Source of the DNA: Aplysia californica
Lineage: Eukaryota
Direction of reading: 5' to 3'
DNA: 62,233 nt
Assembly (NCBI RefSeq): GCF_000002075.1
Contig: NW_004797560.1
Coordinates: forward strand, 490,535-552,767
Shown here one piece after another: positions 9,301-25,904 of this stretch. How positions within the stretch are numbered: the stretch's first letter is position 1; each line of letters opens with the position of its first letter. Under the pieces are notes generated by a model, which was not told where the DNA came from, ran no database searches, and saw only the letters and a program-made list of their open reading frames with translations. The translations under genes and the position numbers were made by a program.

Positions 9301-9729
9301 AGATGTGAAAATCACGGCTGCTTTTGAAATAAACAAAGTTATACAGAAAGTGGCAACTACAGGAATTTAGTCTGGAATATATCGGAAGATAAAATTGGAA
9401 TTTTAAAACAAAATAAATTTTTAGAAAACATTTTCAAAGCAACGTTCAATCGCAAGGACCTACCACAACAGTGGCTGTTCACACACAAAACAAGAGAACA
9501 TTTCATGTGGACAGACATGTCTTTATTCCTGACTAACTTCAAGAACAAAAGAAAACAAAAAACAGTTGGAAATCAAAATGAGTAAAAACAAAAGTAAACA
9601 AATCCTTCTTTCCTCAAACATTCATGGTTAAGGCTGTGCATGTTTTGAAATATAAAAAAGATGCTACAGGAGAACTTGTATTAACCCATTCACGACTCAC
9701 TGAAAAAAAAAAGCTAAGATGATCAAAAG

Positions 9730-10160
9730 AATACGGTTCTGTCCCCTTTTTAAAATTCACAGAACAATAACAATTATACAATGACCATGAGTCTACGACT
9801 CTGTGCCCATTCCAAAATGGATAAAATAATGCTAAGAGAATCATGAGCCTATATCGTTTGTCATCCCCAGTCTAAAACCCATAAAACAATGTTAAAATGA
9901 TTGCGAGGCTTATAACTCTGAAGTCTTTCTAAAATCCATTAAAAAATGACCACAATGATTATGAGCCTATGACTCTGCCATCCTTTTTCTAAAATCGAAA
10001 AAACAATGTTAAAATGATGATGAGGCTTATGACACCGAGCCCTTTCTAAAACCCACACAAAACAGATACAATGATCATGAGACTGCGACTCTCTGTCCCC
10101 TTTATAAAATCCTAAAACTCCACAAAACAATGATAATATAGAGATTATGAGCCTACGACT
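9730..10160. repeat. Degenerate ~60-bp tandem repeat starting at the DDAH exon 5b stop codon
   Basis: Recurrent atgagcctatgactctg...ttctaaaa(t/c)cc...aaacaatg. Confidence 0.75.
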
Positions 10161-10338
10161 CGGAACGTTTCCACATGGTGAAGTACCCGAGGTCCTCGTC
10201 CTGGATGTTGCTGATGATTCTCTTGGGGTGCCTGGTGCGTGTGATGAGGATGGCCTGACTGCCGATGGATCCCCCGACCTTGGCCAGCTCCGTCAGCTGT
10301 ACGTGGTGTCGGGGCCACAGGATCTTCTCGTCCAGAGT
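10153..10338 (-). CDS. DDAH: DDAH alternative last coding exon 5b (TLDEKILWPRHHVQLTELAKVGGSIGSQAILITRTRHPKRIISNIQDEDLGYFTMWKRSES*)
   Basis: ctcccctcgttctacag acceptor, phase 0, GC3-rich; ELAKVGG matches the DDAH ELEKVDG motif. Confidence 0.85.
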   Translation of the reverse strand, partial: TLDEKILWPRHHVQLTELAKVGGSIGSQAILITRTRHPKRIISNIQDEDLGYFTMWKRSES

Positions 10339-11159
10339 CTGTAGAACGAGGGGAGATTATTTTTAGTAAGCGTTTTACGACACTTGCACAAACACAATTA
10401 GGTCTTAGAAGTGCTGAAGATTCGAGGGTGTTACTGTTACGAGAAAGTAACAAACACATAAAAGAAGACAGAAAGATAAGGATGATAGACTTTTGACAGG
10501 AAAAAAGGAGCAAACCACACCAGAGCACCCACCAACTGACCAAATATGAGAGGAGAGACAAGAGAGAAAGCATTTTTTTAAAAAAGAGTTTTTAGTTTAG
10601 TTTTAGTAAGCGTTTTACGGCACTTGCAACAACAAAATTATGTCATAGAAGTGCCGAAGACTAGAGGGAGTTACGAGTGAGTAGCAAATGCATAAAAGAA
10701 GGAAGAAATATAAAGACGATGGACTTTAACAAGAAAGAAGGAGCAAACCACACCAGAGCACCCGTCAACCCACCACATGAGAGGAGAGACACGAGAGAAA
10801 GTAGTATTTTTTTTAGAAAAAGTTTTTAGTTTAGTTTCAGTACAGGTTTTACGGCACTGGAAACACAATAAGGGTCATAGAAGTGCGGAAGATTAGAGGG
10901 TGTTACAAGAGAGTAACAAACACATAAAAGAAGGAGGAAAGATAAGGTCGACAGATGTTGTAGGAAAGAAGGAGCAAACCACATCGGAAGACCTGCCAAC
11001 CATCCACATACAAGGGGAGAAGCGAGAGAAAACATAAGATTAAAATTGGCTGGGTTTCGTTGCGTTGTAAAGGAGGTGACAAGAAAAAGAGATCCAAAAA
11101 CCTTTGGTTGAGTTTGTGGATTTTTAATGCCATGTACATCTGTGTCTCTAACTGAAAAA

Positions 11160-11195
<36 letters not shown>

Positions 11196-14100
11196 GCATT
11201 TGTATAGCGCATATCCCCGCTCAACTGCAGGCTCTATGCGCTTTACACTATATTATTACCCCAGCAGACCACAGAACACTCCGAAACATTCTCAGCTTCC
11301 CGGGAAGCATACAGTGCAAGCAGCTGATTAAGCGCTCAAACACTAACAAACTGACAAGATCTTTCGCTATCTATAGCCGGGTACCCATTCCCACCTGGGT
11401 GAAGTGAGGAAAATTCGTGTAAAGTGCCTTTCCCAAGGAAACAACGTAGGGCCCCTGGCGGGATTCGAACCCATGACCTAATGGTTGCGAGTCCCAGAGA
11501 CTAACCACAAGGCCACCGACGCCACTATCAAACAAAAGAGACAAAACAGACCAAGAACAGCATACTTAGAGTGAGTTTGAGAACTTGAACAGATGACAGG
11601 AAAAGACCAGGATATTCTACAATAGATTCCATAGGTCAAATAAGCGAGAAAATGGCTGTGAAAGTTTTGAGACTTTCAAAGCTTAAGAGTACTAGGAAAC
11701 TGCAAATTTACATTTTTGAGTCATCATCACATTTTTGGGTACCTTTGATGAATGTTTGCGGGTAAAATTCAGAGAGATCTGTTTTTTAAAGGACTCTTTA
11801 GTTTTAGTAGGGGTTTTACGGCACTTGCAACACAATAAGCTCATATAAGTGCCGAAGATTAGAGGTGTCACAAGAGAGTAACAAACATAAAAATGAAAGA
11901 GGGGGAGATAAAGACGATAGATGTTCGATAGGAAAGAAGAAGCAAACCACAGAAGAGCACCCGCCAACCACCCACTCTAAAGTTACTAAGCAACAAAAAA
12001 GTTATTTGATATAAATTGCCCAATAGGCTGAAAAATGTAGGTTTCTTTGACATTTCTTTTTACAAGTGTCTGATTTCACCACAAAGCCATACATTTGCTA
12101 CTAACTTCAAGTGAAGTACTCAGCATTCCTTCGCCTTGCAATGCGACTTTTGTCACCTCAAGACAAGCCTCAGTTGATCGCACAACATAAATTACTTCCC
12201 CTCAATGCATGACTTATTAAACCTCATGACAAACCTCAGTCGACCTCATAACATGACTTACTTCTCTATGGCATGACTGGTAAAGAGTTTTACGACGCTT
12301 GCAATTACGGCACAAGGTCATCTATCTGCCACAACATTACTTACTTCCCTTCCCCTCACAACATGACTTTTATTTCACCTCACCACACATGCTTCAGCCG
12401 ACCTTACAATGTGACCTACTTTTACCTCCCCTCACTGCCCAACTTATTTCCACTAATGACATGTCTCAGCCGGCCTCACGACGCCACATATACTTCCTGT
12501 CATTGTGTGACTTAGTTCCCCTTACGACACGCCTCAGTTGACCTCACAAGGTCACCTACTTCCCCTCACTGCACAACTTTCCTCCACTTATGACATGCCT
12601 CAGTCGATCTAACAAAGTGACCTACTTCGCCACAAGACGTGACTTACTCTAAGTTCGTCTCACGCTGTGACTTACTTCCCTTTATGACACGCCTCAGTCG
12701 ACCTCACAGTCACCTACTTCGCCTCCCGATACACGCGACTTACTTCTATCCGTAGATGATATTCTTGTAAAACTTGAGCTTCAGACACAGCAGCGGTAGT
12801 GAAGAAATCCCGCGGCCAGCAAATGTCAGCTGCTTCATGTCCACCTCTATCCTCTTGACATCTGGGTCAATGAACTGGTCCAACATCTGAGCTCACACCG
12901 CAGTATCAGGAGAGGAAGAACATCCGTGAATTTCTCAGGTGTATTTTTTTGTTTTGTTTTGATTTTTTTTTCAAAGTTATTTCCACGAGAAGCCATTCCA
13001 TGTGAGACCGAGAAGACATTCCGTGCGAGACTGAGACGAGCGCATATATCAGTCCAGTCCAATCCACACGACAACGCAGGCAGGTGAGAGGTTAACATGC
13101 AGCAGTTTCAAGGGCAAGCAGTTTTAAATTGATGACCATCTTTTGTTTTCTCATTATGAACTTTCTTCATGCAGCGTTCAAAATAGGTTTAATTTTTCTT
13201 AAGCCCTAAGTAATATTTTGGGAGGATGCTTTTTTTTCTTCTTAAACTATTGTGAGCAAACACGATATCAGAGATGTTACTTCAACGCACATATTATTAA
13301 ACCTAACAAACGTGCTGTGGAAATATTTACCGACATGCACAAGTTCATAAGTACAAAAGGCAAAGAAATTGTACAAAAGGACATTTTGAGCTACCTTTTT
13401 TTTCTTCTCTTTTTTCACATAGCCTCAGCTGTTCGGAACAAGAAAACCCCCAAAAACTTTTAACGTAGGTATTTTAACGTCCCCATTGGCACAATTTAGA
13501 TCCTTTGGGAGGCAGATATTGATCCTGCTTGTCTGAGCTAACCTGGGCTGAGAGGGATTCAGCATCCCAGCACAAACAGCCAGATACTCTGCGAAAAAAA
13601 ATTCTCTCCACTTAGAAATCCAACTTGCGTCTCCTATGTCAGTTAACTACAACACAGAAACTGGTCATAGCCTGGGGCGAATCCAATCCGAGCTCTGAGA
13701 ATTTACATTTCCTTCATCTGCTGTAGACGGGAAAGTTTACATGTGTACTTGTCTATTGAGAAAACTTCATACATACGAAAAGCAGTGGACTTGGTTCACG
13801 GAAGTGTGGAGTGCTTGCATATAAACCTCCAGTCTCAAATGCATTTTCATAAATTTGTGTAGAAAAGCATGCGGTCAATTTCAACTGAGAGATTATTTAT
13901 TTCAAGTGAGGTATGGTGAATTCAAGCAGATAATGAGAGAAATTAGATCCTTGTGTCACCTCCACGTATTCTTGTAACTCCAAAGAACATCTAGGCCTCT
14001 AATAAAAATCAGCAATCCGCAAAGAAACCGCAATCAAAACATCAACCAAGCAGTTGTGTTGGCACATAACAGCCTAGTCCAGATTCAAAACTCTTCCTGG

Positions 14101-17100
14101 AATGAAAACGCTATGCTCGGCGGCAGAGTTCTTTTTTTGACAAGCCCTTTCCATAAACCTTTTGGTTACATTCTGTTTTATTTAGTTTTAGTAAGTGTTT
14201 TATGGCACTTGCAACACAATTAGGTCATATAAGTACCCAAGATCAGAGGTATTATAAAGGAGTAACAAACACAAAACTAGAAGGGGGAGAGATGAGGAAG
14301 ATAGATGATTGATAGCAGAAAAGGAGCAAACCACACTAGAGCACCCACCAACCTCCCACACATTGTGTTTAGTATTCTAACCACAGCAATAGTCTGAGTG
14401 ATTATATTCAAACTTGTTTAATTTGTTTCCACTTTACATTCTCTTCCACTCTGAACCGACCTCAATTCCTTAGTTCACTTAATAGCAAAGGGGAATTAAC
14501 AGTAGAAGCCGCTTATACTGCCAAACATAAAAACTGAAAACCTGGCTAAATCAAAGAAAATCTGGCGGTCCAACTTATTATAGTTTAAGCAGACACCAAG
14601 AAGGTATTCCGCTGTATATCACTTTGAATAGATCTTGGCTCTAAAACTTCTGAGGGCTCAATTCCTCAAATATTTATTTCCCTTTTTTTCCTTCTGGCAC
14701 AAGAGCAGCGGAATCTTAACTCATGTTTAGTCAAACATTGTTCACCATGCATCTGAAGGTAACATTTTGTAAAGAATAAATTTTTCTGCGTACACAACTG
14801 AAAACATATTATGGTCCAGAGCTCCAAATACAGTCGAACCTGCTTTAAAGGCCACTTGTCCTTAACAATCACTTGTGCAAATGACAAATTACACACCTAC
14901 CCCCCNNNNNNNNNNNNNNNNNNNNNNNNNNNNNNNNNNNNNNNNNNNNNNNNNNNNNNNNNNNNNNNNNNNNNNNNNNNNNNNNNNNNNNNNNNNNNNN
15001 NNNNNNNNNNNNNNNNNNNNNNNNNNNNNNNNNNNNNNNNNNNNNNNNNNNNNNNNNNNNNNNNNNNNNNNNNNNNNNNNNNNNNNNNNNNNNNNNNNNN
15101 NNNNNNNNNNNNNTCCACACAACACACACACAAACATACACACATACAAGACACACACATAGTCACATGGTACAAAGACAGAGGTGTCAATGAGTCTCAA
15201 AACCACGAGCTACAAGAAGCTTCACATCACAGTTCGTTATTCACAGCCACTTCCTTCTTCCTCCACTTCAAACAAAGGGTGAGTAACTCACAACAAACCA
15301 TAGGCTAATCAGTTGTATTTACACATAAATGCAAGTTTAGTTTTTAGTAAGAGTTTTACGGCACTTGAAACACAGTAAGTTCATAGAAGTGCCGAAGATA
15401 AGAGGTGTTACAAGAGAGTATCAAACACAAAAAAAGGAGGAGAGATAAGGACAATAGATGTTAGACAGAAAAGAAGGAGCAAACCACACCAGAGCACCCA
15501 CCAACCACCCACTTACACAGGGTATGCATGCTTCTCACTTATCATTAAGAAAGACTCGTATAACCCTATATTTTCAATCAACAAACAAGAACATATATCA
15601 GTGAAAAATAAAAAACTTCAAAAGAGAAAACTACAGCTTTGTAAGAAAAAAACACTTTTTTTCTTTAAATGCATGGGGGGGGTTACCTGCCTCCCTGTCA
15701 ACACAATCTATATCATTTAGGAAGCAGGTTTCTAAACCTGCCTGTTAAAGCCAACTCATGCTGAGAAAAACTCAACATCCCAGCACAAAGACCGAGAAAC
15801 CCGATCAAACTTACTTTTCTCCCCACTCTGGCATCAAACTTCACAGTTTTCTGTGTGCAAAAAGTGCTTATCTGCAGTAAGCTGACAAATTCCCTTTTTA
15901 TTCAAATTCTTGGCTTCAAATTTTTTTATTTGTTAAATCAAAAGCCTGATCAGTTACCCTAATAGTGTGAAAAAAAAAATTAAAGTGAAACCATGACTAG
16001 TCTTTTTAATATATTAGAATTCAAATTTCCGAAGAGTGCCTTTTTTAAACATTATACTGATAAAAAGCCTCTTTATCTCGAAAATGCTGTGAATAAAAAA
16101 AACTTGGGCGCATTGTCAGCTCATAGTAGTCATGTCCCAATGTCCTAATCACAATGTACTGAGCATCCTCTTCATCTTTTAAATACACATCATCCTAAGA
16201 AAAATGCTGAGCTTGGTTCAAGCCTGAATATACTTCTGTTTTTGATTTAAGTAAACGTTTTACAACACTGGCAACATGATAAAAAAAGGCATACAACAGC
16301 CGAAAATTAAAGACATTACTAGAAAAAGAGGAGAGACATTTGATAGGAAAGAAAGAGTAACCACACTACAGCACTCGCCAACCACCAACACAAATATGCT
16401 ACATATTATTATGTGCCGAAGATTAGATTAACATACAGAGAAAAGGAGGAGGGATTTTTATAGATATCTGAGGGGAAGGAGAAAGCAAAGGAGCAAACCA
16501 AACCCGCAAGCTGGTCAACACCTTTCACTCCTTCCCTTCATCCCCAATACAACAAATCAATACTGTCAACACCTTTCACTCCTTCCCTTCGTCCCCAATA
16601 CAACAAATCAATACTGTCAACACCTTTCACTCCTTCCCTTCATCCCCAATACAACAAATCAATACTGTCAACACCTTTCACTCCTTCCCTTCGTCCCCAA
16701 TACAACAAATCAATACTGTCAACACCTTTCACTCCTTCCCTTCATCCCCAATACAACAAATCAATACTGTCAATACCTTTCACTCCTTCCCTTCATCCCC
16801 AATACAACAAATCAATATTGTCAACACCTTTCACTCCTTCCCTTCATCCCCAATACAACAAATCAATATTGTCAACACCTTTCACTCCTTCCCTTCGTCC
16901 CCAATACAACAAATCAATATTGTCAACACCTTTCACTCCTTCCCTTCATCCCCAATACAACAAATCAATACTGTCAATACCTTTCACTCCTTCCCTTCAT
17001 CCCCAATACAACAAATCAATATTGTCAACACCTTTCACTCCTTCCCTTCGTCCCCAATACAACAAATCAATATTGTCAACACCTTTCACTCCTTCCCTTC

Positions 17101-20100
17101 ATCCCCAATACAACAAATCAATATTGTCAACACCTTTCACTCCTTCCCTTCATCCCCAATACAACAAATCAATATTGTCAATACCTTTCACTCCTTCCCT
17201 TCATCCCCAATACAACAAATCAATATTGTCAATACCTTTCACTCCTTCCCTTCATCCCCAATACAACAAAACATTACTACTGACAAAGCCTCCCCCCCCC
17301 CCCTCAAGCACTGACACACACACAGAACAGTGGACTGACAGACTCACCCCATAGCTTTTGTTGCCCATCTCCTGCCGAACGTGGTGGATGAGATGTCCGT
17401 TGACATACAGCATGTCAGTGGCCAGCCTCGAGTCCATCTGCATCACGTGGTATGGGTAGTTGGCCACGTCTTGCATTTGCTGGAATACCCAGGGAGAAAA
17501 GGATAAAGGATTTATAAAAATACCAACTAAACCTATAGCATATGGATTATTTCGCATATATATAGTAAAACATTCTCTAATGACTTCAAAGGAACCGGCT
17601 CTCTTCTGCCCATTAGGCAATTCTTATCAGGTTGATTTGTTTTGTTTTTTTTATTTTGGGCTGAACGCATTTTAAGATATGAAAAAACACATTTCTAAGA
17701 GAATTTTACTGAAAATCGTTGATCACAAACATAAAAATTGTAAATTTACAGTTTTCAAGGATACTTAAGCTTTGAAAGTCACAAAACTTTGACGACCATT
17801 TTCTCGTTAGATTTACTTCTGGCACCGGATGACCCCCACCTCCTTCAATCACAAACATCTCAACTTCTTCTTTTTTTTTGACATCAAAAGCAAGGCCAAT
17901 AGACTTTACAAGCTTTAATTTGGTAGAAATAACTTCATTATATACCCAAAAATTGATGAGCGCCTGACTCCATCATGCTGCGACACAAACAAGCTGTAAT
18001 AGGCTAATACACAAGCAGTTATAATATATATCTCAAGCTTATACCTGGAGCACGGCTTGAACATCAGGGCCCGGTGCCACTGCCATGACATTTCTGCCGG
18101 CCATGTTGAAAACATCCTTCAGGTGCAGAGCCTCGCAGTTTCCAAAGTTGACCTTTGACACGGCGTACTCGGGGAATGCTTCAGCCACCGCCTGTGCCCC
18201 TGCCTCATTGGTTCGCTTGCCAACACCAACAAAAATCTCTTTGCCTTGGGATAAAAAAAAGATAACCAGTTGAACATATTGTTATGATATTGTAGTTATG
18301 ATAATGTAGTCATGAATTTGCAAAATCAAATTGAAACTACAAAATCTGAATCAACATCAATCTGTAAGTAATAACATTAATCCCCCCCCCCCCCTCCTTC
18401 CATGTCAATTATCTGGGCTGGCAACCGTAGTCGCAGCCCCCTCCTCCCTCCCCAAGGCCACAGTAGTCATGCCCCCAACCATACATAAATCTGACCTAGC
18501 TAGCAATGGAATAGAGTAAAAGCATGAATGAATATATACTAAACAGTCAAGTAAACGTGAAAAAGTTATCATAAAACCTACAAACAATCAAATAATGGAC
18601 GACACTGGCTTGTAGGTAATTCTTTACTTTCATCATTTAACACCACTATAACAGAAAATCAAAAATTTTTAATAATTACGCCATAAACATTTGCCAAAAG
18701 AAAAGGAAACTCACTGAAAACTATAATCCCATTGACTAACTAAATTTGATATGGATGATCTTTTAATTAATTTTAAGTCTTGTAAAAGAACGCCAATTTA
18801 GAAACTTTCTGACATTTGTTGTTGTTGTTGTTGTTTTCGATCCAGCAACAGCTGGGCTCTCGCCCTTCTGTCCAATGCCATGTAGAGATAAGTGCAGGTT
18901 TGCTGCAGTTGCTGTAATGTTCCATAGAGTGTGTTGTCAATGTTAGGTCACGGAGGGAGAAGGGTACTACCTAGCTCTGATGTCATTTAGGGCTGTGCAG
19001 TGGAACAGGTGATGCTCCACTGTCTCATATGCATAGTCACACAAGGGACACATTGGGGGAAGTTCCGGGTTTATTCTGTTCAGGTGGAAGTTGACCTGTT
19101 CTGACATTTAATATTATATGATCTGTTGGTGACATCCACATTAATCATCAATGTTTCTGTCAAAACAGGTAGATATATATACAACTCACCAGTGAACAGA
19201 ACATCTCCACCATCTAGGGTTGCCTTCGCATTTCCAATTTCAACAACATTCATACGCAAATCTCCTTTCAACACTTTCCTGATTTCACCTACCTGAAAAA
19301 CAAAAAAAAAGTCAACATCAGCGACTTAAAAAAAATACACAGAAATACTGAAAAAAATTATGCTGCGTAAAATTAAAACTATAATTAATTAATTCACTTT
19401 ACAGGGGTCACCAGTTCTGTATTAAAATCACAGTTTAATTATAGCAACCACTAACTTTTATTAACAGTTTTAGTCTTAGCCCAGGAAATTTAGAATCGTC
19501 TTGTTCTGATCCATTTCCAGCAGGAGAGTCAAGAGTAAAGAAAAATGTGTAACGACGCTGTGGAATCAGGTCTGTCAATTTTTAGGCACGACATGGTGTT
19601 ATTGGTGTCGCTTTTTAAAGCTTGTTACATTAGCCTTGCTTTTGATATACAAAATACCCATTTATCTTGAATGCAAATCCGAGATATTTGCAATTGAAGG
19701 AGGTCAGGGTTGTCTGGTTTCAGAGGTAAAATTAGTGAGAAAATGGCAGCCAAAGTTTGAAAACTTCCAGAGCTGAGAATCCTTGGAAACTGAAAGTTCA
19801 CATTGTGTGTGCTTTTTTAAATCAATGTTTTTCAGTAGAATACACATACACAATTTAATTGTGTTTTTAAATGTACATAAAAGGGGTTGAGCCTACAAAA
19901 CAAAACAAAATAAATCCATATGGCCCAAAAAATGCCAATTTCTTTGATTTCATTATTTTGGCGAGCGCCTGATTTCACCACGCTGCCTCACAAATAGATT
20001 GCACACAGTGTAACGCTGCAAAACAGCGTCAGTGAAGGGTGGGGTTTCAACTTAAAATATTAAGTTAGTTAATTAAATTAGCTTAGATCAGGGCTCCCCT

Positions 20101-22933
20101 TTAAGCACAAATGTGCGTATTACGCATTAAACCTGCAGATTACACGTTTCAAGTTTTGGTGGTGCGTGAGCTTTACTGTTTATAATTTCATTTCGGAGGT
20201 TTGTATATATGCTTTAAAATGTAGGTGGTGTGCGTCTGGCAGGCATCATTTTGGCCCTTCTCTATCCTGAAGCAGAGTCATTGATTTGACAACGCACTCA
20301 CTCACATGCACGACAGTCATCTTCTGTGTCAGAAAAAGTCGACTAGTCGACTTACTTATTTATCAGCTGCGCGCATTTTCCGGCAACACCGGCCGGCTTC
20401 AGCATAAAAAGCTCAGCCTACATTCTGGTGGCTCACATTTGCCAGTGTCGTGCCGTGAGTTTACCCCTACTGTGAGATTACACCCATCCTTCTTTAACAC
20501 ACTAGTAGTAAACATGAATTGTCTGCCACCGAAAGTGTGGAAAGACTGAAATGTGAACCCTGGGATGGCTCTGAAGAACAATGAATCAGTTTATTTTCCA
20601 CCAAATCTGCCACTCATCCCTGCTTTAAATCTCAAGCATCCCGATTTATCCGATTTGGATCGTGTGTACCCCGATATTTTTTTGGGGGGGGGGGGTTTTA
20701 TCCGCCTGTTGCACCCGATTTTTCTAAAATCTTACTCTGTCTTCTTTTCTGTCGTGGGAAGCACTTCCTTTTAAATTAAACCTTTTGTCAGCAGAAACTC
20801 GGAGCACTATTTTCCTAAAAGTCTATGTCGAATTTTGTACGTTGACTCACCAAAAGTTGAGTTGGATCTTTGCTCAACGTATTATTTCAAAGAGTAACTA
20901 TAATGGAAGTAGTATTGATTCGGCATTCCGACTTTTAAGACATTCTCAAGATCTACTAAATGCCTAAACATGCTTTGTCCGAGTTCTGGTTAGTCGTCAG
21001 TAAAACTTCCAATCGTGCGCTTGCACACGTAACAGGACTTCGGCACGTGAGTTCCACAGGCGTGTGTCGGGGATCGTCCGTTGACGTGGTCAATTTAAGT
21101 TCATGCGCACCGGTTGAAGCGTCTTTCAGGACTTATCCGGGGGGAAGAGGGGGCATGTAAAACACTTGGACTAGGAGAGCTTGACGTGATATTTCAGGAT
21201 TTTTTAAAAACTGATAAAACACACATGCACGCTCAGACACACACACACACTGCGTGTGCACAGACACTCATACACCACACACACGCGCACACAAAGGGAA
21301 TACACGTGGATTTAATAAAATAATGGATACTCCTGGAAATTTTTTCAGTTAACTTGGCAGTGACCTTTTAAGTGATTTGTCGTTGATCTCGATTTTTTTC
21401 ACCAGACTTTTAGATTTCATAGAGTGGCAGGTCTATTTTTCTTGGTGTATTAAACCCCTTTTGGTTTGTCAACTTATATTTATTGTATTTTTGAGGCCCA
21501 ACTGCTCAACCACCACCACTCCCCCCCCCTCCCAATAGATACACAACTCTAATTCTAGTCAATATTACTTATTTATTTCTTAAGTTTTAAATAAAAATCG
21601 TAAGCATTCAATTATAGTCATGGTCACTGAGTCACTCTGTGTGTGTCTGTAAGCTGTGTGAATGTGCATGTATAATGTGAGTTTTACAAGCAAAAAATCT
21701 TACCATAAAATTATGAATTTTACCCTTTAAGTTTCTAAAACAAGAGTGTAAAATACCCCTTAACTTTTTAAGATAGTAAACCAAAGCGGAGTGATTATTC
21801 TCATCCGGGGTGAGGATAAACTGGATATTGTATTCTCACCCGGGGTGAGAATAAAATTGATACTATTCTCACCCGGGGTGAGAATAAAATTGATACTATT
21901 CTCACCCCGGGTGAGAATAAATTGAGATCTAGATCTAGACTCTAGATCTAGATCTAGATTCTACTAGATCTACTCTCACCCCGGGTGAGAATAAACGACG
22001 ACCGTCTACTCTCACCCGTTTTTTTGTTGTTTTGAGCATCATAGGACCCCTGTCACTGAGCGCTCCAGGTGACAAAACTCGCCTCCCTCTCTCACTCCGC
22101 TGAGCGCAGGAGGCAGCGAAAATCGCCAACGGGCGGGCCAGCTCTCGAGAGCGGGAGGCGACTATTGTCGATTTGGGGGAAAACTTATCTTTTGAGCATA
22201 TAGCGTCACTTTTTGAAGCTATTTATTGGTTCTGTTATGGAGAATTTTACTCTTGAATAGTTTTTAAACAACCAATCAAAATTAAGAAATAACGACCGAC
22301 GACAGCCAAACGAAAGGAAGAAGGAACCTCTAAAAGTTGGCCTGAAAAGGGGAGCCCTGCTAGATTCTAGATCTCTAGATTTTTCTAGATTCTAGCTAGA
22401 ATCTAGATCTAGATCTAGATCTAGAATCTAGATATCTAGTAGGGCTATTTTCACTTTGTGACAGTGTGAGTGACAGTCATTGACTCATTTTGTCAAATTT
22501 TGATTTTTGATTCCTTTCACTTTCAGCACCTCTAGATTCTAGACCTAGATCTAGACCACTACATGAACATTTACAGTAAGTACCAGGTACAATAATGAAC
22601 TATGTGAAGGTGTAGATCTAGATCTAGAAATCTAGTAATCTTTAGACTTACTTCTCCTTGTCTTGAACTGTGTCCAGGCCGGGCTATCAACGCCGTGTTT
22701 CCTATGACCACTGCGGTGTCATCCACGAAACAGCAGTCGGGGTAGCTTTCATCTTCGACAAGTTCAATGATGTTGATATCACAATTTTTCAAAACTTCCC
22801 TGATCGTCTCATACTCTTGTCTCGCTTTCTCTACATCAACACCGTTTGGATAATTATCCGACCCAACGCTCCTGTTTTTCAGAGAGTTGGGCACACGGCA
22901 AATAATAGCGAAATTGTAGTGAAACGCCGACAT
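10153..22933 (-). CDS. DDAH: Dimethylarginine dimethylaminohydrolase (DDAH)-family gene, 5 coding exons per isoform, 285 or 300 aa depending on terminal exon
   Basis: Exons 22652-22933 (duplicate 24862-25143), 19190-19292, 18045-18244, 17348-17479, then 12746-12886 or 10153-10338. All introns GT-AG with compatible phases 0,1,0,0. Motifs YPDCCFVDDTAVV, RPGHSSRQGE, LDGGDVLFTGKEIFVG, RTN, LHLK. Confidence 0.92.
11160..11527 (-). mobile_element. Full-length tRNA-derived SINE with L2/CR1-like tail and (TTA)n end
   Basis: A box ggtggccttgtggttag, B box gggttcgaatccc, tail gtaaagcgcatagag...gcgctatacaaatgc(tta)n; partial relatives at about 1058-1156, 30020-30305, 33265-33560, 53530-53690, 55243-55320. 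Confidence 0.85.
11797..11975 (-). repeat. Representative of a high-copy ~170-bp interspersed repeat (SINE or LINE-3'-tail-like); at least 15 copies in the window
   Basis: Consensus gtgggtggttggcgggtgctctggtgtggtttgc...cggcacttatatgaccttattgtgttgcaagtgccgtaaaac...actaaaactaaa with a terminal stem-loop. Copies near 630, 749, 1190, 1420, 10361, 10590, 10826, 11797, 14180, 15337, 16243, 26000, 54448, 55345, 57095, 58219, 60917. Confidence 0.85.
12100..12745. repeat. Degenerate tandem repeat containing copies of the DDAH exon 5a donor site
   Basis: Recurrent gtgac(t/c)tacttc (gaagta[a/g]gtcac on the - strand) and gcctcagtcgacctcac. Confidence 0.75.
12746..12886 (-). CDS. DDAH: DDAH alternative last coding exon 5a (MLDQFIDPDVKRIEVDMKQLTFAGRGISSLPLLCLKLKFYKNIIYG*)
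   Basis: ctcag acceptor, phase 0; aligns by eye to the DDAH C-terminus and to exon 5b; gtaagt donor 2 nt after the stop. The acceptor pyrimidine tract is weaker than that of 5b. Confidence 0.7.
   Translation of the reverse strand: MLDQFIDPDVKRIEVDMKQLTFAGRGISSLPLLCLKLKFYKNIIYG
16514..17270. repeat. 51-bp homogeneous minisatellite, about 15 copies, in DDAH intron 4
   Basis: Unit gtcaacacctttcactccttcccttcatccccaatacaacaaatcaatact. Confidence 0.97.
17348..17479 (-). CDS. DDAH: DDAH coding exon 4
   Basis: ttccag acceptor, QMQDVANYPYHVMQMDSRLATDMLYVNGHLIHHVRQEMGNKSYG, gtgagt donor. Confidence 0.88.
18045..18244 (-). CDS. DDAH: DDAH coding exon 3
   Basis: (G)KEIFVGVGKRTNEAGAQAVAEAFPEYAVSKVNFGNCEALHLKDVFNMAGRNVMAVAPGPDVQAVLQ; aag acceptor, gtataa donor. 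Confidence 0.92.
18816..19080 (-). mobile_element. 3' fragment of a LINE (ORF2 CCHC knuckle plus (CAA)n tail) in DDAH intron 2
   Basis: Minus-strand translation PMCPLCDYAYETVEHHLFHCTALNDIR; ends in acaacaacaacaac. Confidence 0.75.
19190..19292 (-). CDS. DDAH: DDAH coding exon 2
   Basis: ttttcag acceptor, VGEIRKVLKGDLRMNVVEIGNAKATLDGGDVLFT(G), gtgagt donor. Confidence 0.92.
20089..22359. mobile_element. Non-autonomous hAT-like element in DDAH intron 1
   Basis: TIRs cagggctcccctt (20089) and aaggggagccctg (ending 22359; duplicate right end at 24589); flanks gcttagat / ctagattc are only an imperfect TSD; internal palindromic attctcacccggggtgagaat repeats at about 21800-21995. Confidence 0.6.
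22652..22933 (-). CDS. DDAH: DDAH coding exon 1 (copy A)
   Basis: MSAFHYNFAIICRVPNSL...YPDCCFVDDTAVVIGNTALIARPGHSSRQGE followed by a gtaagt donor. Confidence 0.9.
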
Positions 22934-24861
22934 GTTTACTTGCTTTGGGTTCTTCAATCTGCACTTCCGCGTTCGCAGGAGAGTGACTCGTTTTCGCACG
23001 GGAAACGCTCTATTGAAATAAAAATACTGGATTGGACAGGATTTATTTCGAGGATATGGGATTGGCTTCCGATAAGCCTACGTAAAGAGTAAAGAGGGAG
23101 AAGTTAATAGAGCGAGTGGGATTATTGGGATAGTCAGTCATGCGGGTGAACTCTAGTGAACAGTTGAGTGAATAATGAACAGTCATCAAACTGTATAGTA
23201 AACTTGTACCTGGAGAATCTTTGCTTGTTGTACTACACCCTATAATAGCCTAGTCTTCTATTAGTGAGCGCATGTGTGCGTCAAAACTGGAAAATCCGAT
23301 GACAATACCACAGACGGCCAGAGATCTGCTGTTTAGGCGGATAGGTCGCGCGAATGACGAATGGGCAAGGAGTTGCGAATGGGTTGATTAGAAGATGAAA
23401 CGTAATAAATTCCGGATATAGCAGTGAGGCAATGACGCGGATGTCGAAAGAAAGGCGGATACTATGCGATTAGCTAGGCCTAATGGACTAGCAAGCGAAA
23501 AGACTTGAGGCGAGGTCGAGCTTTTATAAAAATGGGATGTAGCATCGTCGAATACAAAATCGTTTAAAATTGCAACTAGCCTACATGTATCTCCCTTGAA
23601 CTTTGAAGATAATACTCTAATAAGGTTGTTTTGGGGCTATTAGAGTTTGTGTGTGTGTGTGCGTGTGTGTGTTTGTGTGTGTGTGTGTGTGTNNNNNNNN
23701 NNNNNNNNNNNNNNNNNNNNNNNNNNNNNNNNNNNNNNNNNNNNNNNNNNNNNNNNNNNNNNNNNNNNNNNNNNNNNNNNNNNNNNNNNNNNCTCTAATT
23801 CTAGTCAATATTACTTATTTATTTCTTAAGTTTTAAATAAAAATCGTAAGCATTCAATTATAGTCATGGTCACTGAGTCACTCTGTGTGTGTCTGTAAGC
23901 TGTGTGAATGTGCACGTATAATGTGAGTTTTACAAGCAAAAAATCTTACCATAAAATTGAATTACCCTTTAAGTTTCTAAAACAAGAGTGTAAAATACCC
24001 CTTAACTTTTTAAGATAGTAAACCAAAGCGGAGTGATTATTCTCATCCGGGGTGAGGATAAACTGGATATTGTATTCTCACCCGGGGTGAGGATAATATT
24101 GTATTCTCACCCGGGGTGAGAATAAAATTGATACTATTCTCACCCCAGGTGAGAATAAATTGAGATCTAGATCTAGACTCTAGATCTAGATCTAGATTCT
24201 ACTAGATCTACTCTCACCCCGGGTGAGAATAAACGACGACCGTCTACTCTCACCCGTTTTTTTGTTGTTTTGAGCATCATAGGACCCCTGTCACTGAGCG
24301 CTCCAGGTGACAAAACTCGCCTCCCTCTCTCACTCCGCTGAGCGCGGGAGGCAGCGAAAATCGCCAACGGGCGGGCCAGCTCTCGAGAGCGGGAGGCGAC
24401 CATTGTCGATTTGGGGGAAAACTTATCTTTTGAGCATATAGCGTCACTTTTTGAAGCTATTTATTGGTTCTGTTATGGAAAATTTTACTCTTGAATGGTT
24501 TTTAAACAACCAATCAAAATAACGACCGACGACAGCCAAACGAAAGGATGAAGGAACCTCTAAAAGTTGGCCTGAAAAGGGGAGCCCTGCTAGATTCTAG
24601 ATCTCTAGATTTTTCTAGATTCTAGCTAGAATCTAGATCTAGATCTAGATCTAGAATCTAGATATCTAGTAGGGCTATTTTCACTTTGTGACAGTGACAG
24701 TCATTGACTCATTTTGTCAAATTTTGATTTTTGATTCCTTTCACTTTCAGCACCTCTAGATTCTAGACCTAGACCACTACATGAACATTTACAGTAAGTA
24801 CCAGGTACAATAATGAACTATGTGAAGGTGTAGATCTAGTATACTTAATCTTTAGACTTAC

Positions 24862-25143
24862 TTCTCCTTGTCTTGAACTGTGTCCAGGCCGGGCTATCAA
24901 CGCCGTGTTTCCTATGACCACTGCGGTGTCATCCACGAAACAGCAGTCGGGGTAGCTTTCATCTTCGACAAGTTCAATGATGTTGATATCACAATTTTTC
25001 AAAACTTCCCTGATCGTCTCATACTCTTGTCTCGCTTTCTCTACATCAACACCGTTTGGATAATTATCCGACCCAACGCTCCTGTTTTTCAGAGAGTTGG
25101 GCACACGGCAAATAATAGCGAAATTGTAGTGAAACGCCGACAT
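24862..25143 (-). CDS. DDAH: DDAH coding exon 1 (copy B, probably the allelic copy)
   Basis: Same translation and donor as copy A; lies inside the 2.2-kb duplication across the N gap at 23693-23792. Confidence 0.8.
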
Positions 25144-25904
25144 GTTTACTTGCTTTGCTTCTTCAATCTGCACTTCCGCGTTCGCAGGAGAGTGACTCGT
25201 TTTCGCACGGGAAATGCTCTATTGAAATAAAAATACTGGATTGGACAGGATTTATTTCGAGGATATGGGATTGGCTTCCGATAAGCCTACGTAAAGAGTA
25301 AAGAGGGAGAAGTTAATAGTTAAAGCGAGTGGGATTATTGGGATAGTCAGTCATGAGGGTGAACACTAGATCTAGTGAACAGTTGAGTGAATAATGAACA
25401 GTCATCAAACTGTATAGTAAACTTGTACCTGGAGAATCTTTGCTTGTTGTAGGCCTACTACACCCTATAATAGCCTAGTCTTCTATTAGTCATAATTAGT
25501 GAGCGCATGTGTGCGTCAAAACTGGAAAATCCGATGACAATACCACAGACGGCCAGAGATCTGCTGTTTATGCGGATAGGTCGCGCGAATGACGAATGGG
25601 CAAGGAGTTTTACAGTCTAAGCTCCTTGCGAATGGGTCGATTAGAAGATGAAACGTAATAAATTCCGGATATAGCAGTGAGGCAATGACGCGAGTGTCGA
25701 AAGAAAGGCGGATACTATGCGATTAGCTAGTGGACTAGCAAGCGAAAAGACTTGAGGCGAGGTCGAGCTTTTATAAAAATGGGACGTAGCATCGTCGAAT
25801 ACAAAATCGTGTAAAATTGCAACTACATGTATCTCCCTTGAACTTTGAAGATAATACTCTAATAAGGTTGTTTTGGGGCTATTAGAGTTTGTGTGTGTGT
25901 GTGC

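Follow-up and report, generated by a model that had tools for sequence, protein, structure and literature searches.

The question raised by this locus of Aplysia californica is why a DDAH-like gene should carry two different last coding exons, and what the choice between them would do to its protein. The locus lies in a stretch of 62,233 nucleotides (contig NW_004797560.1 of the RefSeq assembly GCF_000002075.1, positions 490,535 to 552,767 of the forward strand), hereafter the window, which has a GC content of about 40% and contains tandem repeats, repeats resembling short interspersed elements (SINEs) and N gaps. The initial annotation, made from the letters alone, had read in it a DDAH gene in which an old exon duplication lets splicing exchange the active-site segment. 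Our analyses make it highly probable that the single DDAH-like gene detected in Aplysia has a last coding exon duplicated in tandem, and that the two copies serve as alternative endings, the upstream copy (exon 5a) being included as a cassette ahead of the downstream copy (exon 5b). An old duplication with alternative use of the copies is supported by the RefSeq isoforms, by NCBI isoform pairs in five molluscs, by orthologues of 5a in seven other species and by a signature of purifying selection.

Exons read directly from the sequence compose a five-exon DDAH-like gene on the minus strand, with two candidates for the fifth position:

22652 to 22933, minus strand: exon 1, with its ATG at 22933, 94 codons, phase 0 and a GTAAGT donor
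19190 to 19292, minus strand: exon 2, 103 nt, ending in phase 1, equal to residues 95-128 of both RefSeq isoforms
18045 to 18244, minus strand: exon 3, 200 nt, with the conserved LHLK histidine and the KRTN motif
17348 to 17479, minus strand: exon 4, 132 nt, 44 codons, ending in phase 0 with the donor ...TAT GGG/gtgagt
12746 to 12886, minus strand: exon 5a, alternative, 141 nt, 46 codons plus TAG, with a gctcAG acceptor (AG at 12888-12887)
12738 to 12743, minus strand: putative donor GTAAGT for splicing of 5a to 5b, separated from the 5a TAG by 'aa'
10153 to 10338, minus strand: exon 5b, last coding exon of constitutive type, 61 codons plus TAG, with a ttctacAG acceptor

On re-reading the sequence, the coordinates and splice sites that the initial annotation had given for exons 4, 5a and 5b were all correct, and so was its placing of a gtaagt donor 2 nt after the 5a stop (12743-12738). 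Exon 4, as it had also claimed, ends in phase 0 and is able to join either of two open exons, both of which begin in phase 0 and are preceded by an AG acceptor; that of 5b has a strong polypyrimidine tract and that of 5a is weaker. It erred in stating that neither exon appears in the list of open reading frames (ORFs) in the correct frame, 5a being present in frame in a list made with a 40-aa minimum.

The exon peptides of the window are, without exception, exact substrings of the RefSeq products, in which they begin at positions 1, 95, 130, 196 and 240. Exon 1 supplies residues 1-94, the exon 3 peptide starts at residue 130, and exon 4 supplies residues 196-239 of both isoforms. RefSeq lists three transcripts for the gene, annotated as DDAH1: X1 and X2 (XP_005101650.1 and XP_035826475.1) are 300 aa long and end with 5b, and X3 (XP_035826476.1) is 285 aa long and ends with 5a; 5a is found only in X3 and 5b only in X1 and X2. 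Both isoforms are thus already publicly annotated, RefSeq listing the products only. These entries give identical products with no statement of the paralogy of the two exons, of their conservation in gastropods and a scallop, of the donor after the stop or of the loss of the nucleophile, and we found no paper on isoforms of the DDAH-like gene in the literature. An exon model drawn from the sequence alone therefore matches RefSeq, and what is added here to the annotation is the evidence of conservation and selection.

The same two endings recur in other molluscs. A phmmer search with exon 1 against a library of 1.84 billion representative sequences returned 1034 matches, the best full-length one being a 298-aa protein of Batillaria, and this protein retrieved from a library of 5.8 billion sequences molluscan 'DDAH1-like' proteins, several of them NCBI isoforms, of about 300 or about 285 aa. 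A tail of 5b type (xLDEKI...KVGGTISSL...SNIQDEDLGYFTMW) ends the proteins of Pomacea, Babylonia X1, Biomphalaria X1, Haliotis X1, Ylistrum X2 and others, and a tail of 5a type (MLDQ/ELxK...DPDLKRHE...LLxLKLKxYKxIIS) ends Physella X2, Babylonia X2, Littorina X2, Haliotis X2 and Ylistrum X1. NCBI isoform pairs with both tail types are accordingly found in Physella, Babylonia, Littorina, Haliotis and Ylistrum, and the tail of Physella X2 is a clear orthologue of the 5a of the window. The Physella 5a region and the 5a of the window, each put to a word-index protein search, gave no match among cluster representatives, a result that is uninformative because Aplysia X3 sits behind a cluster representative of 5b type.

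Are the two exons copies of one another? The initial annotation had proposed that their peptides align and yet are strongly diverged, with both frames open. The peptides of 5a and 5b are colinear, and their Smith-Waterman score of 35 stands against 18.4 +/- 3.5 in 5000 shuffles (p = 0.002), a value that becomes marginal once the many ORFs of the 7-kb intron are allowed for; at the nucleotide level, no similarity between the two exons was detected (p = 0.36). Comparison of alignments of 5a and 5b from seven species by hhalign gave a probability of 96.5% and an E-value of 7.8e-10 over 44 colinear columns. It is this profile-profile comparison which, at the level of sequence, establishes 5a and 5b as paralogous exons. 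The further claim that both peptides align with the C-terminus of DDAH stood in the context of the full-length protein and failed for the single exons: neither 5a nor 5b alone matched Pfam or the DDAH entries of the PDB, and this null says nothing, because the pieces are too short.

We fetched orthologous loci, mapped their exons and built a profile hidden Markov model (HMM) from five foreign 5a-type tails only. Among 5956 six-frame fragments of the window and six loci, the best match of this foreign-only profile was the 5a of the window (E 4.7e-20, 69.9 bits). The profile also recovered 5a-type exons in Bradybaena (E 9e-16), Elysia (4e-13) and Biomphalaria (5e-12), whose retrieved proteins hold no such isoform; the second-best match of the profile was the 5b exon of each locus (E 9e-7 to 9e-3), that of Haliotis reaching only E 3.1. 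Patella vulgata, too, has a 5a exon (E 1.9e-11). An intact orthologue of 5a is present in seven other molluscs (Haliotis, Biomphalaria, Babylonia, Ylistrum, Elysia, Bradybaena and Patella), so that the absence of a conserved orthologue, which the initial annotation had named, next to a lack of reads joining exon 4 to 5a, among the findings that would speak against it, is not what related genomes hold. The order exon 4, 5a, 5b is kept in 8/8 genomes, Aplysia included, and in all eight the frame of 5a begins behind an AG acceptor in phase, stays open for 44-48 codons and closes with a stop. Since the exon pair occurs in gastropods and in a scallop, the duplication of the terminal exon should be older than the split that separated pteriomorph bivalves from gastropods; other lineages would later have lost 5a or let it diverge too far to be detected. 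We regard it as a very old pair of duplicated terminal exons, common to patellogastropods, vetigastropods, caenogastropods, heterobranchs and one scallop.

The selection test proposed together with the initial annotation pointed in the same direction. Between Aplysia and the other heterobranchs, 5a shows 57-65% amino-acid identity with saturated synonymous sites, and its proportion of non-synonymous differences (pN) is 0.26 against a proportion of synonymous differences (pS) of 0.57-0.94 (one-sided Fisher p 2e-3 to 2e-11). Exon 5b is more constrained (pN 0.07-0.11, 84-92% identity), and pN is below pS for both exons. Judged by these substitutions, 5a is under purifying selection. The idea that the frame of 5a is a chance ORF was rejected on the evidence of profile, conservation and selection together.

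Some observations weigh against the reading of 5a as a working alternative ending, and they have to be set beside this evidence. No 5a was detected within the gene in Mercenaria (a clam), Argonauta (a cephalopod) or Owenia (an annelid). The isoforms of RefSeq and of other NCBI entries are automatic models, some of which could have been propagated by protein homology; isoform models of the NCBI pipeline are normally built on transcript alignments. Three poly(A) RNA-seq runs of Aplysia, surveyed from 9400 to 13000, had no read depth over 5a, 5b or the 3' untranslated region (UTR); reads in this interval fell on intronic repeats only, and a fourth run behaved as genomic DNA. The DDAH-like gene is silent in these three runs, and junction counts are uninformative: they reflect a lack of expression in those samples and do not demonstrate that the junctions are missing. 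One could build on such observations the view that 5a is a decaying pseudo-exon or an unused artefact of annotation, its likeness to 5b being a relic and the isoforms of X3 type being propagated by homology. The lack of 5a reads would fit this view, though 5b has none either, and so would the non-synonymous evolution of 5a, about three times faster than that of 5b, and the failure of phmmer to align 5a any longer to vertebrate DDAH1. We nevertheless hold it to be very improbable: in eight species, and despite saturated synonymous sites, the frame has stayed open over 44-48 codons, from an in-phase acceptor to the closing stop; pN falls significantly short of pS, and a profile made of foreign sequences only finds the exon at E 4.7e-20. 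A neutral stretch of 141 nt of intron would not stay alignable across Aplysia, Patella and a scallop, and the selection signal in 5a excludes a neutral pseudo-exon.

If 5a is a genuine ending, it may be spliced onto 5b or it may close the transcript by itself. The initial annotation had suggested the former, with 5b serving as 3' UTR, and the comparison across species backs this suggestion. A GT[AG]AGT motif follows the 5a stop in 5/8 species, at +1 nt in Babylonia, +2 in Aplysia, +3 in Biomphalaria, +4 in Bradybaena and +12 in Elysia, and the chance of finding such a donor in at least five of eight species, calculated from the hexamer density of each locus, is about 1e-9, an estimate that treats the species as independent and so overstates the significance somewhat. 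In Aplysia itself the motif stands at the edge of a repeat:

12130 to 12720, no strand assigned: tandem array of about 66-bp units, directly downstream of 5a, the units carrying GAAGTARGT(C/G)AC

The GTAAGT after the Aplysia stop is the first unit of this array, and donor-like hexamers return at +70, +98, +401 and +484. Taken alone, the Aplysia motif is weak evidence of a donor because it is part of the repeated GAAGTARGT array. That it is a mere by-product of the array was rejected as the sole explanation, since a donor stands in the same place in other species; the exon-intron boundary may have been the origin of the array, which offers alternative donors.

The other possibility is that transcripts with 5a are cleaved and polyadenylated at a separate site after it, which would make 5a a true alternative last exon and set splicing to 5b in competition with polyadenylation. 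The points that count against the cassette are also those which lend this possibility some substance: no donor-like site follows the 5a stop of Haliotis within about 45 nt, Ylistrum (CAG/GTATCT, +10) and Patella (AG/GTATTA, +5) offer only weaker candidates, and Aplysia has an AATAAA 372 nt past the 5a stop, so that a poly(A) site proper to 5a could exist. The isoform proteins of NCBI cannot separate the two models, because the protein products are identical. Against a last exon stand the exact GTAAGT or GTGAGT motifs found 1-12 nt past the stop in five species of two gastropod subclasses, where the flanking intron is otherwise unconserved and chance would give such a pattern at about 1e-9, and the ab initio gene predictions of Batillaria and Mytilus coruscus, which join 5a-type to 5b-type sequence. 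In the oyster alternative oxidase (AOX), moreover, a gene with a comparable arrangement, the first duplicated exon accounts for the difference in length between the two mRNAs (PMC5589949). On balance we find it unlikely that 5a is a last exon only, and a poly(A) route after 5a may coexist with the cassette route. The conserved donor just after the stop favours 5a as a stop-carrying cassette.

The gene could accordingly be understood as follows. A tandem duplication of the last coding exon would have preceded the divergence of gastropods and pteriomorph bivalves. The downstream copy, 5b, would have become the slowly evolving default ending of a 300-aa protein, and the upstream copy, 5a, an alternative exon of phase 0 with a weaker acceptor and with an in-frame stop at its end, followed after 2 nt by a consensus donor. 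Whenever 5a is included, translation would stop just before the 5a/5b junction, 5b would be reduced to 3' UTR and a protein of 285 aa would result. The two endings would then be exclusive at the protein level because of the stop codon of 5a, and not because splicing excludes one of them. That a stop within about 50 nt of the last junction escapes nonsense-mediated decay is a rule established for mammals. We infer that the junction 12744>10338 is used, that the transcript escapes this decay and that the switch has a consequence for function.

What would the switch exchange? The family of the protein was tested on the RefSeq products and its fold on models of orthologues. The RefSeq products pass the Pfam cut-offs of PF19420 (DDAH_eukar) and PF02274 (ADI) with 33-36 bits (cut-offs 23 and 22.8; E 3e-8 to 4e-9), and phmmer matches the RefSeq product to human DDAH1 at E 1e-47; as lone exons, exon 1 reaches DDAH_eukar at E 0.004 and exon 3 reaches ADI at E 0.0015. 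The AlphaFold2 (AF2) model of the Physella 5a-type isoform, with a predicted local distance difference test (pLDDT) of 94.7, superposes over residues 1-276 on bovine and human DDAH1 (2ci3, 6szq) with Z of about 40 (40.9 for 2ci3) and a root-mean-square deviation (rmsd) of 1.4-1.5 A. The model of Biomphalaria X1, of 5b type (pLDDT 93.8), has the same strand-helix-strand ending as the 5a-type model. Modelling both isoforms, as had been proposed with the initial annotation, thus gave orthologue models which each complete the pentein fold; both isoform types are shown to be compatible with a completed propeller of five beta/alpha modules, and with no more than compatibility. It counts against our interpretation that this completion is not independent evidence, because the alignment given to AF2 contained homologous C-termini. 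The exchanged unit would be the last strand-helix-strand of the pentein propeller, which in true DDAH is the segment of the Cys nucleophile.

It is precisely there that the molluscan protein departs from the enzyme. We read the nucleophile column in an alignment of 96 sequences, in which the first C of LLTCCS corresponds, going by the titles of the PDB entries 3p8p ('C274S') and 1h70 ('C249S'), to human C274 and to C249 of P. aeruginosa. This column holds Ser in 24/24 molluscan 5b sequences, Aplysia included, and S, A, R, R, R and N in six 5a sequences, so that neither ending has the Cys nucleophile of a catalytically competent DDAH (EC 3.5.3.18). The Aplysia isoforms and almost every orthologue keep the catalytic His (LHLK) and Asp (LDGGD); Ylistrum has Arg at the His column. 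The best PDB sequence match of the 5b isoform is an engineered human variant, C274S (3p8p), whose residue 274 is aligned with the Ser of 5b, and the 5a tail, as said, gives no phmmer alignment to vertebrate DDAH1. The two endings differ also in length: 5b has a conserved acidic and aromatic tail (SNIQDEDLGYFTMWKR), 5a lacks it and is 15 aa shorter. The swap of an active-site segment, as first proposed, therefore holds for the strand, in a paralogue that has already lost the Cys from both versions.

Most likely, then, the switch would not operate between two active enzymes. It would lead from a tailed form with Ser to a shorter form which has no conserved residue at that place, and what it would most likely change is the pocket wall, together with the tail, of a protein of DDAH fold that is non-canonical and probably no hydrolase. 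Queries with two canonical, Cys-bearing DDAH proteins of molluscs (Lottia, Babylonia) matched only the DDAH-like locus in the Aplysia assembly, a search of limited sensitivity, and Aplysia may have no canonical DDAH and possess only the Ser-type paralogue. Nitric-oxide signalling is much studied in these animals. It is tempting to speculate, though we consider it rather unlikely, that the Ser-type paralogue is a sensor or regulator binding methylarginine or arginine, whose pocket and docking tail would be toggled between 5a and 5b and which would feed into nitric-oxide signalling. The testable question is raised in any case of the role of a DDAH that is conserved, spliceable and devoid of the cysteine.

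The comparison with known proteins of the same fold suggests how far this departure goes. Vertebrate DDAH1 (2ci3, 6szq, 3i2e) would share the pentein fold of the modelled orthologues (Z about 40, rmsd 1.5 A, about 35% identity), with His and Asp conserved; it has a Cys nucleophile, whereas the molluscan 5b has a natural Ser and 5a no conserved residue. In this respect the 5b isoform resembles the engineered human C274S variant already mentioned. The C249S variant of Pseudomonas DDAH (1h70) is catalytically inactive. A DDAH-like fold without the catalytic Cys is also seen in catalytically dead pentein-fold proteins such as RESC5 of trypanosomes (8dpk), which the fold search returned at Z 26, and PF26170 is among the precomputed Pfam matches of the DDAH-like orthologues. 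The sequence relation to RESC5 is distant, however, and RESC5 acts in an RNA-editing complex, a role for which there is no evidence in the DDAH-like gene.

The arrangement of the exons has precedents as well. In the oyster alternative oxidase, a last exon duplicated in tandem gives CvAOXA and CvAOXB by 3' alternative splicing (Liu & Guo 2017, PMC5589949). This is the nearest precedent that we know: it is likewise a mollusc gene in which either copy of the duplicated terminal exon supplies the C-terminus, and there too it is the first copy that has changed around functional sites, the second being better conserved (PMC5589949). The protein family is another one, the AOX products are equal in size whereas the 5a form of the DDAH-like protein is 15 aa shorter, and the oyster case is backed by mRNA and stress-expression data whereas the DDAH-like pair is known here from sequence and annotation. 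The DDAH-like pair, on the other hand, is much older than the oyster pair, being common to gastropods and bivalves. The second system, known from lophotrochozoans and nematodes, is that of coq-2a and coq-2e, mutually exclusive homologous exons which alter the active site; helminths, annelids and molluscs have them (Tan et al. 2020, PMC7434440). As is proposed for the DDAH-like gene, tandem homologous exons are swapped by splicing and the substrate pocket is altered, and here as there the arrangement is conserved across lophotrochozoans; unlike in the DDAH-like gene, the exons are internal and are excluded by splicing, whereas here the exclusivity would come from the stop at the end of the upstream copy. 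No new mechanism is thus involved, tandem duplication of an exon followed by alternative use being classical. The interest of the pair lies mainly in its age, in an exclusivity enforced by a stop and in the question of what a spliceable DDAH devoid of the cysteine does; its place is in the catalytic-centre segment of a well-studied fold.

Exchangeable exons seem to have arisen more than once in this gene family. The locus of the annelid Owenia fusiformis has two tandem copies of the 132-nt equivalent of exon 4 (19657-19788 and 21047-21178), with about 50% protein identity, and the two annotated proteins, CAH1787661.1 and CAH1787660.1, differ in which of them they use; at 16610-17070 of the same locus the beginning of exon 3 is found in several partial copies. 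The exon 4 switch of the annelid is an independent event of exon duplication, one exon upstream of the molluscan one. If the Ser-type paralogue were indeed such a sensor or regulator, the molluscan gene would be a pseudoenzyme switch controlled by splicing, and the annelid duplication would suggest that selection has favoured exchangeable pocket walls repeatedly in the family. In Priapulus caudatus, the DDAH1-like isoforms X1 and X2 have C-termini that diverge only after the LLINK strand, a different and shorter alternative ending, and Ser occupies the nucleophile column there as well.

Searches of the Aplysia genome with the 5a and 5b peptides returned the exons themselves only, with no dispersed paralogue. 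A search of the same genome with Pfam PF19420 gave no match, even to the DDAH-like gene itself, the method being insensitive to split genes. Within the window, the first exon is present twice:

24862 to 25143, minus strand: second copy of exon 1, with 282/282 identical coding nucleotides and the same GTAAGT donor

With about 1 kb of flanks (22300-23400 and 24500-25600) the two copies show 95% column identity, indels included, the flanks differing by a few indels and substitutions, and an N gap at 23693-23792 separates them. The duplicate is either a very recent tandem duplication or an artefact of assembly or haplotype, and the doubled exon 1 might be the reason why RefSeq has two transcripts (X1 and X2) of the same protein.

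The intron between 5a and 5b is filled with repeats, at 10357-11060 and at 11770-11975, together with a SINE:

10357 to 10983, no strand assigned: 234-bp tandem repeat of a very high-copy element, abutting the 5b acceptor
about 11400 to 11530, no strand assigned: tRNA-like SINE, in the intron between 5a and 5b

RNA and DNA reads alike pile up on these intron repeats at very high depth and on both strands, and continue from there into unrelated sequence.

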